A stretch of DNA of 64,000 bases from Adineta vaga (GCA_021613535.1 CP075497.1:5022001-5086000), one strand, 5' to 3'. Shown: positions 1 to 3,462, numbered from the stretch's first letter. A program made the numbers and translations. Notes: a model not told the origin generated them from the letters alone.

Positions 1-717
1 AATTATTGTAAATAAATACAGCGAAATTTCTTGGATAGTCAAGTTAAGGATGTGAATATATTTTACGCATTTCAAAAGAAAAACCGCATATTTGTTCGAC
101 TATATCTGTATTCAACATATTTTATCAATGAAACAAATCTACTAGATATAATTGTCTACTTGACTTTACTATTCAGTTGGTGTTTTAGATTTGGTATAAT
201 GAAAAATATTTTTATTACTCTGCTTTACTTTCTTTACCTTCATAGAGTACATGTCTCTTCAGACGAATAATAAACTAGATGTCTGAATTGCAATAGAATA
301 AAATAGTCGTAAAGCGTTAAGTATTTCAAGTTTCATCGATAATCATCACCACAAACTACCTTTCAAAACTTATTGGACTGCATAGTTTTTGACGAAATTT
401 CAGTACTACATTCAAATTAAGTCTAACCAACGCTGTCACAATGAAGTAAAGAATAATAAATCTTCAGTCTTTGTTTATTACTATTTTACAAACCTTTACT
501 ATAGGTTTAGGAGGAAAATAATTCTCTGAAGGTCTATATCCCGCCAATAAATTCAAAAAAGACTTATAAAATAACAATAAATGTAGATTAAAAGTTTACA
601 ATGTTTCACTAACATGTTTTAATGTTTGAGGGTGGGTGTGAGTATGTTTAATTCTTCTGTAAACGACAGTTTTAACGCGTTTCTTTTCATTAATTTTTAC
701 TCCTATGCTAGATAAAT

Positions 718-1250
718 ATGAAACGTACAAAACAATGTTGTTTTAGTTTTTGTGGAACACTCAAAGAGTACGTATTCAATCCTTAAATGTTTTTTTTGTA
801 CGTTAGCTGTATTTTTATTTTATTAGACTTGCTACTTGAGGTAATATCTTGAATTCAGCGATAAGTTTTGTTCTTGGCACTGCATTTTCTAATGTTATTC
901 AATCACTTGTTGATGATATTATGACACCACCCTTAGGTTTAGTTTTGGGTGGTGTTGATTTCATTAATTTAACAATTAAAATGCCAAATTTCATTTATAA
1001 AGATCAACCACCAGTTGTTATTCGTTACGGAAGATTTATTCAAGCACTTATTACTCTAGTTATTGGGGGACTGTCACTTTTGGGTATACTCAAGAGTATC
1101 TATAAACTTTATAGAATAGCTTCGGAACAGGAACAAAAATCTGATTGTGAAACAGCAAATGAAGTAAGAGAAGAAGTGAAACTTTTACGAGAAATTCGGG
1201 ATATATTAGCTCGATCATCCCAAATGGAATCAGTGGATATTCAACTATAA
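718..1250 (+). CDS. mscL: Large-conductance mechanosensitive channel MscL homolog, intron-containing, with in-frame TGA at codon 21 (possible pseudogene or base error)
   Basis: Exon 718-767, GT-AG intron 768-826, exon 827-1250. Translation: MKRTKQCCFSFCGTLKELAT*GNILNSAISFVLGTAFSNVIQSLVDDIMTPPLGLVLGGVDF...IRYGRFIQALITLVI...EEVKLLREIRDIL. This matches the MscL motifs RGN, DIIMPPIG, GGxDF, YGxFI and LLxEIRDLL. Confidence 0.9.
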
Positions 1251-1832
1251 CATCTTTTTTGTTCCACGACTTTTTTTTTCCAAAGATTAACTCTCTTTGT
1301 TATATTGCTTAATGTCATAGAAAAAAAAACATTTATTTGTTCGAAAAATGTCCGACGGCAATAGAAGTATATGCGTAGCGAAAGAATAAACGACTTCTAA
1401 ACTGTACAAATATATGATCTGCTAATGAGAAAAAAAGCACTACACACTCAAAAATAACTCGATGAGACCAAAGAGTAAAATAATAGATGAACAAAGAAAA
1501 AAAATTGATGACATGAACAAAATTTGAGTATTCGACAATCATTTTTATAAAAAAAAAAGAGAGAGAAGAAACAAGTAATACAAACGAAGTACACACGTAC
1601 ATATACAAAACGAAAAAGAAACTAACATGAAGTAAAATGTAACAAGAAACAAAAAAGGTAAAAATCGATTAATACGATTTCGACATGAGACGTAAATAAT
1701 CATTAATTATCTTTAACAGATAGATGACGAGATTCATGAGAAAGACGAAACATGCGAATATGAATACACATTGAAAATTGCACGAACTAAATACATATTC
1801 AATATGTTTTCATTGACTTGTTATCTTAGGAT

Positions 1833-3462
1833 TCATTTTTTGACTCGAGAACGAACTTTACGTGCAGGTTTGTCTAAATGATCAATGAATGATATTGTGA
1901 AATTGTAAAATAAAATCTCTTACCTTGTTGAGAACTGTCACTGTCTCGACGCATACCACCGACACCTTGTGCTGCTTGATTAGCTAATTTTGAAGCATAT
2001 AAATTAGCTTCTTCTTGAGCTTTACCAATATTTTTCTTATATCGTATACGTTTATTACCAAACCAATTACTAACCTGAAAGAAAACCAATTCAGAAATAT
2101 AGATGACAAACGAAAAGAAAAGAAAGCAGCTGTATATTCCCCAGTCACTTATTATCTGTCGATTGGTAATTCAAGTACAAGAAGATTCTCCATAGAAAAC
2201 CTTGAAAGACAAGGTCAACGTTTTTATTCAGCGCCTTATAATTAACTGTTCACACAATAGAACCGTTCGTATCTATTTTAAAACGCGTAACGAATTAAAT
2301 GGATTCAACTTTGAAATGACTTTTTCTGAAAAATGCTCCTTATTTGATTTCTTACTTGTGATACACTAATACTGCATTTTCTCGCCAATTCTTCTTTAGC
2401 TTCTTCACTTGGATATGGATTTGATAGATGTGAATAGAAATATTCGTTAAGAACTTCTGTAGCTGTTTTACTAAAATTTCGACGTTTTCGTCTAGAAAGA
2501 AAAAGATTAATTAGAAACACATGTATTTATCAGTATTATTTACCGCGCATCGAGAAACCGTGAACGAAGTATCATCACAGCTTCACATGTACTTTGTTTC
2601 AATTGTAATTGAATTGATGAAAATTTTTTTCGAATAATCATCACCATTCGATCAATTTCTCGTGGTGAAATAGGTCGCGCACGACTTTGTTCTCGTAATA
2701 AATTTATAACATGACTGGTGAAATCATTACAAGCTTGTTCATATTTTTCAAGTTCACTATGATACAATTGTCGAATTTGAGATAATTTTGCACGATAATC
2801 ACCGTGTTCTAGTGCTGAATCATCATTTATACTAGCAGCAGCATTAGCACTGGCCGCTGAAGATGATGATCCACCTGTTCTTTCAGGTCCAGCAATACCT
2901 TGAAATCAATGGTATAAAGAATCTTTATTGATAAGAATAATAAAGAATTACCTTCAGCAATTAACATATTATCGAGTCGCATTAGTTGTGAATCTGGTGG
3001 TTCATCTTCCGGTAGATTTCGAATATTGATTGCTAGATATGATAAAAGAATAGTTAGAATATTTGAGAAAGAATTAATTGAATATACCTGTTTTCTCTTT
3101 GATTTCACAAAGTACTTGAAAAAAAGCTGGTTTAAGTCGACTTTGATTGAATGCATGTTTCCTAGAAGAAGAACATATGGAATGAGTTAATATATTGAAA
3201 GTAATATTATTCTTTTCACATACCGTGCTTGAGCTTCATCAAGGCTTTGATCAACAATGGACATGATTTGTTGAAGCATTCCATTAACATCATTAAATGG
3301 TTTATTTTCATTAATTCCTGTATCATAAAGATTATATTTTACATCAGATGATGACAAGGACAATGGTGGCTGTGCTGGTACTCCTAGTGGCATCATTTGA
3401 CTATAATGAGATGGTAATGGCGGTGGTACACCTTGACCGTATCCTGGATCTTGACCGTCCAT
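1833..3462 (-). CDS. pbx: PBX/extradenticle TALE homeobox transcription factor (multi-exon)
   Basis: PBC domain segments ([50 protein letters not shown]) and the TALE homeodomain [40 protein letters not shown]...[18 protein letters not shown] at 3462; last exon ends ...RSRVKK* at 1833. Confidence 0.95.

Follow-up and report, generated by a model that had tools for sequence, protein, structure and literature searches.

The DNA analysed here, called the window below, is a stretch of 64,000 nucleotides (nt) from chromosome 6 of the bdelloid rotifer Adineta vaga (C6:5022001-5086000). Close to its start, at positions 718-1250 of the plus strand, lies C6b, a gene for the bacterial-type osmotic channel MscL. 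C6b is the downstream member of a tandem MscL pair located between a gene for a 2-oxoglutarate- and iron(II)-dependent (2OG-Fe(II)) oxygenase and a PBX homeobox gene; its partner, C6a, is found about 1 kb upstream, just beyond the edge of the window. The genome was searched as a chromosome-scale assembly of six contigs (100.8 Mb), in which seven MscL genes are present: C6a and C6b, the tandem pairs C3a and C3b on chromosome 3 and C2a and C2b on chromosome 2, and the single gene C5. On the reference haplotype, the reading frame of C6b is interrupted by an allelic TGA codon.

The C6b gene and its premature stop

The gene was first proposed by a model working from the sequence alone (the original prediction), and its identification as an MscL is borne out. 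The Pfam MscL profile (PF01741) matches 840-1247, the part of exon 2 that follows the TGA, with E 3.5e-24 and 85.9 bits (cut-off 27.4), covering positions 12-122 of 123, and residues 14-132 of the solved E. coli MscL align to exon 2 with E 1e-18. An AlphaFold model of C6b (predicted local distance difference test score, pLDDT, 78) comprises a helix at residues 2-35, a hairpin at 45-62 and a second helix at 64-133. The topology predicted from it, a first transmembrane helix (TM1), a loop hairpin, a second transmembrane helix (TM2) and a C-terminal helix, is the one expected of an MscL. When this model was submitted to Foldseek, the best six PDB matches were all MscL (probability 0.91-1.0, with E-values of only 0.01-0.05). 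In the sequence comparison with solved structures, the best PDB match of C6b was 9tiv, a G22S mutant of the E. coli channel.

The resemblance to E. coli MscL (PF01741, TC 1.A.22; structures 28oa, 9tiu and 9tiv) extends nearly from end to end. Both proteins have G26, A28-F29, S35, V37, D39, P43, Y75-G76, F78 and the C-terminal EIRDxL, and the same topology is predicted. In contrast to the E. coli gene, C6b contains a spliceosomal intron, a 12-residue Cys-rich extension and an N-L-T sequon in the loop. Exon 1 encodes MKRTKQCCFSFCGTLKE and a partial codon; within it, the Cys-rich extension is MKRTKQCCFSFC, and the N-terminal helix starts with GTLKE, against KEFKA in the other copies. The features of the locus are collected in Table 1.

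Table 1. Features at and around C6b, in window coordinates
Feature	Position	Strand	Details
Candidate intron in the 5′ untranslated region (UTR)	638-711	+	GTGAGT at 638-643, CTAG at 708-711, AG at 710-711; putative donor
Trans-splice or cis-splice acceptor alone (alternative to the 5′-UTR intron)	700-711	+	Pyrimidine tract and AG
Start codon ATG of C6b	718-720	+	Window sequence
Exon 1 of C6b	718-767	+	50 nt; start codon, Cys-rich extension, diverged first part of the MscL N-terminal helix
Spliceosomal intron of C6b	768-826	+	59 nt, GT-AG, phase 2, within bacterial-derived coding sequence
Exon 2 of C6b	827-1250	+	TM1, extracytoplasmic loop with NLT sequon, TM2, C-terminal helix
In-frame TGA	837-839	+	Site of the conserved Arg (E. 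coli R13); codon 21 after intron removal; polymorphic with CGA
Alternative AG acceptor of the public gene model (P0001, I4U23_028837)	864-865	+	Avoids the TGA; deletes 13 residues including the start of TM1
Terminal stop codon of C6b	1248-1250	+	
Conserved PBX 3′ end and 3′ UTR	1323-1879	-	Converges on C6b; 76% identical in DNA to the PBX-flanking locus of A. steineri
PBX/extradenticle-type homeobox gene, exons (PBC domain, TALE homeodomain)	1874-3156	-	Pfam PBC E 7e-34; Homeobox_KN/Homeodomain E 1e-10

The coordinates of the original prediction are exact in the window sequence, including those of GTGAGT at 638 and CTAG at 708-711, and the GT-AG intron that it placed within the coding sequence is supported by comparison rather than by junction reads. 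Its position and phase are conserved in all seven A. vaga paralogues and in three orthologues; the annotated orthologues of A. ricciae, A. steineri and Rotaria sp. extend 55-56 nt beyond their coding length, which fits the same intron. The seven copies share one layout, namely a Cys-rich exon 1, a phase-2 intron and an exon 2 that begins with F-A-x-R-G-N. In all of them the intron lies within bacterial-derived codons of the N-terminal helix, so that its gain must postdate the transfer and predate the duplications.

With the intron removed, the frame of C6b reads L-A-T-TGA-G-N, a stop at which the original prediction had only hinted. At this codon the other copies have CGT or CGA (Arg), except C2b with CAA (Gln), and TGA differs from CGA by a C-to-T change at a CpG. 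Assembled contigs of four sequencing runs (X1, X3, X5 and X9) were compared with 2,406 nt; such contigs hide rare variants and phase. Run X5 gave no contigs matching the locus. In X9, a DNA run of 2013 labelled with the same organism, a bubble of two contigs spans L002:2888-3030, equivalent to window 725-867, and at L002:3000 (window 837) T occurs at depth 66 and C at depth 78. Furthermore, an independent genomic contig of 516 bp (L008), which is 98% identical to the locus with the intron included, reads ACT CGA GGT. Apart from the nonsense change, the two C6b alleles differ by four synonymous and four non-synonymous nucleotides, the latter amounting to three amino-acid replacements. The open reading frame through Arg13-Gly14-Asn15 is broken on the reference haplotype and open on the CGA allele. 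The TGA in C6b is real but allelic, and the nonsense mutation is recent.

Selenocysteine insertion or read-through at the TGA is ruled out because the alternative allele has a plain CGA. A scan of metagenome contigs for the 21 nt surrounding the stop, the variable base being given as Y, yielded no match.

Several further observations concern this region. Over 725-867 the reference combines the intron and exon-1 letters of one X9 contig with the T at 837 of the other, which may represent a consensus mosaic of a haploid assembly, or recombination or gene conversion in culture. The contig L008 derives from ENA ERZ977842 (run SRR1699484), labelled as a marine metagenome; rotifer DNA in such a sample may reflect a real presence or cross-contamination. 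Lastly, the C2b-type subfamily (G000:C2:4256324-4256710 in A. vaga, P0121 in A. steineri, P0122 in R. sordida) carries Gln at the equivalent of Arg13 (FALQGN). Because this Gln is conserved across species, the arginine is not essential in bdelloid MscLs.

Divergence of C6b and origin of the family

C6b falls within the C6a subgroup (support 99), on a terminal branch of 0.46 against 0.059 for C6a, an approximately eightfold difference. In the codon tree it is the sister of A. vaga C6a (bootstrap 75), and its placement outside all C6a orthologues is about 28 log-likelihood units worse. A second gene between MscL and PBX is absent in A. steineri. In A. ricciae, no counterpart of C6b was found in the 3 kb following the MscL orthologue, and a protein search gave none above 66%. 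Given this tree placement, the lack of a second A. steineri gene and the lack of a closer database orthologue, C6b is, as far as sequence comparison can tell, a duplicate or conversion product of C6a which arose in the A. vaga lineage. The two genes (C6a: I4U23_028836, P0003) have the same exon-intron structure and the QCCFSFC motif, and their second exons are 67% identical. Unlike C6b, however, C6a retains all family-invariant residues, sits on its short branch and has orthologues in A. ricciae, A. steineri and Rotaria.

The substitutions of C6b affect conserved sites. In E. coli numbering they include V16I, D18N, L19S, G22S, V23F, A89G, F93L and N100Y; in addition, the basic cluster that follows TM2 in the E. 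coli channel has become EQEQ and both Phe of the N-terminal helix have become Leu. Of 27 columns with a conservation of 88% or more in 49 other MscLs, C6b is off consensus in 6; most rows are so in 0-2. The hydrophobic gate of TM1 is lost, Asn, Ser, Ser and Phe occupying the positions of D18, L19, G22 and V23. D18 and G22 each reach 98% conservation in the 49 other sequences; L19 and V23 remain below the 88% threshold in this alignment, and the matching positions are invariant in the 15 other bdelloid MscLs. G22S is a classic low-threshold, gain-of-function substitution of E. coli MscL (PMC5366917, PMC5897719).

Selection was assessed with our own GY94-type branch model (F3x4) on eight sequences and 136 codons of exon 2. 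The ratio of non-synonymous to synonymous rates (omega) is 0.29-0.32 on the C6b lineage and 0.12-0.13 elsewhere, across three topologies. In all three, a one-ratio model is rejected (p 0.004-0.018), as is omega = 1 on C6b (p about 0.001); the synonymous divergences (dS) are noisy, 0.4-1.4. Constraint on C6b thus appears relaxed about 2.5-fold, yet present for most of its history. C6b is a genuine MscL, as the original prediction held, but no clean example of a domesticated channel: it has diverged more than any other paralogue, its gate is no longer hydrophobic, and its reference haplotype is interrupted by a nonsense codon.

The family as a whole was placed by an exhaustive HMMER search of 1.8 billion representatives. 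Five bdelloid-type clusters score 152-193 bits, and everything else remains at or below 120 bits and 52% identity. The named proteins in the close group belong only to Adineta, Rotaria and Didymodactylos. The named outgroups are bacterial, comprising Neisseria and metagenome-assembled genomes of many phyla at 40-51% identity; the nearest prokaryotic loci, in the same range of identity, are those of Planctomycetota, Nitrotoga, Geobacteraceae, Nitrospirota, Zixibacteria, Chloroflexota and Acidobacteriota. In a tree of 163 rows (IQ-TREE, LG+C20, quick search, unrooted, backbone unresolved), the bdelloid sequences are all set apart by a branch with a support of 100 in the Shimodaira–Hasegawa-like approximate likelihood ratio test (SH-aLRT), opposite 137 bacterial-type rows. 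Because all bdelloid MscLs form one clade apart from the bacterial-type MscLs, the data fit one old transfer of a bacterial-type mscL into the bdelloid lineage, a transfer for which no donor lineage is singled out. The old, domesticated acquisition suggested by the original prediction agrees with this clade and with the background omega.

The MscL genes are well integrated into the host genome. They contain introns, have metazoan neighbours and occupy collinear blocks on chromosome pairs: the order PBX(+), C3b(-), C3a(-) on chromosome 3 mirrors C6a, C6b, PBX(-) on chromosome 6. The GC content is 32.5% in C6b and 28-34% in its surroundings. A. steineri keeps the order 2OG-Fe(II) oxygenase, MscL, PBX, and A. 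vaga C6a has the same oxygenase upstream (tblastx). The Rotaria locus has the oxygenase and MscL and, after them, a sequence like the PBX 3′ UTR. A foreign, bacterial-type origin followed by integration, as originally proposed, accounts for the collinear copies, the shared intron, this synteny and the host-like GC.

Two features distinguish the bdelloid proteins from their bacterial relatives. The Cys-rich N-terminal extension, which the original prediction had noticed in C6b, is real and nearly invariant across bdelloids: it counts about 9-12 residues, and C8 and C12 are at least 90% conserved. It is considered specific to the clade because bacterial homologues begin at about bdelloid residue 10-13. 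The second is the N-L-T sequon in the outward-facing loop (window 966-974 in C6b), present in 15 of 16 bdelloid rows against 1 of 34 others, with one further N-L-S. The extension may be an S-palmitoylation or membrane-anchoring motif, and the N-L-T site may be N-glycosylated. The sequon is a possible eukaryote-specific adaptation.

The MscL of Didymodactylos carnosus (P0126), a deep-branching bdelloid, lies within the clade on a very long branch of 1.46. Its annotated N-terminus has no Cys motif; the first exon may be mis-annotated.

Possible histories of C6b

We propose the following sequence of events. A bacterial-type mscL would have entered the bdelloid lineage in a single ancient transfer. 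It would then have gained the intron in the codons of the N-terminal helix, the short Cys-rich extension and the N-L-T sequon of the outward loop, and would have multiplied to seven copies, with the core family under strong purifying selection. From homology and constraint, the subunits are expected to insert with cytosolic N- and C-termini, to form pentamers and to open a large pore as membrane tension rises. The likeliest use in bdelloids would be the relief of hypo-osmotic swelling, on rehydration or in dilute water. C6b would be a later duplicate or gene-conversion product of C6a; its protein has evolved about eight times faster under relaxed constraint, and its gate has exchanged the hydrophobic L19, G22 and V23 for Ser, Ser and Phe. 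The TGA haplotype is most likely null: the stop precedes TM1, and nonsense-mediated decay would be expected. The CGA haplotype encodes a full-length MscL with a polar gate, which would act as a low-threshold or modulatory subunit or as a partly disabled one.

Taken as a whole, it is probable that the family stems from one transfer and that C6b is a diverged duplicate with an altered gate, stopped on one haplotype and either dispensable or heading to loss. As to the present role of C6b, we lean towards a dispensable duplicate drifting toward loss. This is favoured because the null allele is tolerated, A. steineri has no orthologue and the changes spread beyond the gate. A specialised subunit is a less likely outcome, which we would still take seriously. 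Rather improbable is a further proposal, according to which the C6b of the CGA allele is a gain-of-function-like subunit with a hydrophilic gate, co-assembling with C6a and lowering the threshold in soft, sterol-containing membranes. Here the family would serve as an osmotic release valve on rehydration, and the nonsense allele would be a dosage polymorphism of a potentially leaky subunit.

The best-surviving competitor holds that C6b is fully functional and neofunctionalised. Its hydrophilic gate would have been selected for a low-threshold channel or for a modulatory subunit of heteropentamers with C6a, and the TGA would be a recent, incidental heterozygous mutation. Such a history agrees with an omega of 0.32 that is significantly below 1, with the clustering of changes at gate positions 18, 19, 22 and 23, with the ability of G22S to lower the gating threshold of E. 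coli MscL by itself, with the existence of the intact CGA allele and with a probable RNA contig on exon 2. However, conserved residues are also lost beyond the gate (A89G, F93L, N100Y, EQEQ and both helix Phe to Leu), an orthologue is lacking in A. steineri and in the 3 kb downstream in A. ricciae, the best hit of the protein search reaches 66%, and the clone tolerates a null allele whose frequency is about 50%. We consider neofunctionalisation doubtful, if far from negligible.

It is quite unlikely that the stop is bypassed by normal splicing from 767 to 866, as in the gene model I4U23_028837, which would give a 144-residue protein devoid of the TGA and of 13 residues of the N-terminal helix and TM1. 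This is precisely the structure annotated publicly as P0001, and the AG at 864-865 preserves the frame. Nevertheless, the acceptor at 826 is homologous in all paralogues and has a strong pyrimidine tract, whereas the one at 865 lies in a weak, purine-rich context, has no homologue among the acceptors of the paralogues and lacks read support. Moreover, on the CGA allele the segment left out is coding and conserved, and without it the protein would lose the beginning of TM1, including the conserved Gly-Asn (E. coli G14-N15) and the altered gate positions. Gene predictors routinely sidestep in-frame stops by choosing other acceptors, and we regard the acceptor of the public model as a probable workaround of this kind.

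For the family, an origin from another eukaryote (fungus, oomycete or protist), or from an ancient eukaryotic gene lost in other animals, is likewise quite unlikely. The tree leaves some room for it, being unrooted, with the bdelloid clade on a long branch (0.6 + 0.45) without a resolved sister and with rows that exclude named eukaryotic MscLs. Against it, every named protein near the clade in the database search is bdelloid or bacterial. Among the 120 closest proteins listed, only some of which carry names, there is no named animal or other eukaryote outside the bdelloids. In addition, homology begins at residue 2-5 of typical bacterial-type proteins of 135-150 residues.

An assembly or polishing error that created the TGA in an intact gene is very improbable. 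The reference is a mosaic of two X9 haplotypes within 140 bp of the stop and L008 has CGA, but the independent 2013 run contains a T contig beside the C contig, and the T allele therefore exists in the DNA of the animal. Bacterial contamination or a chimeric contig join, which would agree with the mainly prokaryotic occurrence of MscL and its bacterial nearest outgroups, is effectively refuted by the chromosome-scale assembly with seven copies in collinear paralogous blocks, the spliceosomal introns, the GC of 32% that matches the neighbours, the oxygenase-MscL-PBX neighbourhood in another bdelloid genus and an even X9 depth across the locus.

Several points weigh against the history that we prefer, a single transfer followed by the decay of C6b. 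Near the stop, the reference mixes both X9 haplotypes, and phase is unfixed beyond about 140 bp. The assembled contigs of the four runs include none that crosses a splice junction at the locus. The sole sign of C6b transcription is a single exact contig of 158 nt on exon 2 (975-1132), from run X1, which is only guessed to be RNA; across C6a, C6b and the DNA that separates them, the contigs of this run are confined to exonic stretches of the two genes. The public gene model skips the stop by means of its other acceptor, and a shortened product may exist. Selection was estimated with a codon model of our own and on a short gene (136 codons). An omega of 0.32, below 1, would mean that C6b was functional for most of its history, and the raised value could reflect an adaptive change of the gate instead of decay. 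Finally, the unrooted tree points to no particular donor lineage, and a eukaryotic intermediary may have been involved.

To our knowledge, MscL is regarded as a prokaryotic (and fungal or protist) channel that is lacking in animals. When bioengineers use it in mammalian cells, they currently bring it in from outside as a tool. A native MscL family with introns, conserved across bdelloid genera, would point to long-standing use of the valve by an animal, and its seven genes allow the link between an osmotic valve and survival of drying and rehydration to be tested. Intron-bearing, horizontally acquired genes of bdelloids are a known class in the literature on bdelloid genomes (Gladyshev 2008, Flot 2013, Eyres 2015, Nowell 2018). 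The MscL family resembles other such genes in its prokaryotic type, its host-like GC, its host-sized introns, its multiplication on ohnologous chromosomes and its conservation across genera. Unlike the usual members, which are metabolic enzymes, MscL is a membrane channel.

As a single locus, C6b is otherwise an ordinary member of this well-known class, and bdelloid MscL proteins have already been labelled automatically in public databases. Newly described here are the stop carried by one allele, the change of the gate, the relaxation of constraint and the synteny history of C6b. The gene offers a natural experiment: a young duplicate whose gate has turned hydrophilic and which is half-way to loss, since one haplotype is stopped and the other still open. 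From it one can learn which residues of MscL are tolerated by an animal membrane and how foreign-gene families turn over in bdelloids. A literature search on MscL in rotifers, in bdelloids or in metazoan horizontal gene transfer (HGT) found no relevant paper in the collection searched; PMC2667189 contains no MscL text, and PMC11451251 mentions MscL and rotifer/HGT topics only separately.

Upstream region and neighbouring genes

A second intron, in the 5′ UTR, had also been suggested in the original prediction. Its acceptor has comparative support: of 10 bdelloid MscL genes, whose upstream regions are otherwise unalignable, 9 show a pyrimidine-rich tract with AG at 0-11 nt ahead of the ATG, and the acceptor at 710-711 is plausible for this reason. 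Its pairing with GTGAGT at 638 is less secure, as the same acceptor could equally take a spliced leader; spliced-leader trans-splicing is known in bdelloids. Scans for sigma-70 promoters and terminators at the locus gave chance-level results, and no bacterial expression signals are left there.

The upstream neighbour of C6a-type MscL genes is conserved in Adineta and Rotaria. This oxygenase has the domains DIOX_N and 2OG-FeII_Oxy and was placed at L002:1-624, L090:1522-2866, L089:1885-3218 and L092/L093:1-1053. A Pfam scan of an upstream open reading frame of 61 residues gave no match.

A dead tandem copy is found in Rotaria sp. Silwood1, at the position of A. vaga C6b. This degenerate second MscL (L093:5665-5949, also L092:5675-5959), uncalled in the annotation, follows the C6a-type gene at a distance of about 1.1 kb. 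Its sequence begins RLALVGNVVNLNI...; it has lost the conserved Arg and Asp and is truncated before the VVIRYG motif. Both this relic and C6b stand downstream of a C6a-type gene and upstream of PBX-like sequence, and both have lost the Arg and Asp. In contrast to C6b, which is full length with one open allele, the relic reaches 18 bits, below the Pfam cut-off.

The metazoan PBX gene that the original prediction had placed about 600 bp from the MscL is confirmed by its PBC domain and homeodomain on the minus strand. Comparison with A. steineri puts the end of its coding sequence near 1835, some 585 bp from C6b, and the PBX transcript may overlap the 3′ end of C6b in antisense. The conservation of the PBX 3′ UTR is unusually high. 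Over about 557 nt past the coding region, A. vaga and A. steineri are 76% identical, and the identity with Rotaria is 74% over 348 nt. A contig of 778 nt from run X3 starts at window 1211 and enters this PBX 3′ stretch.

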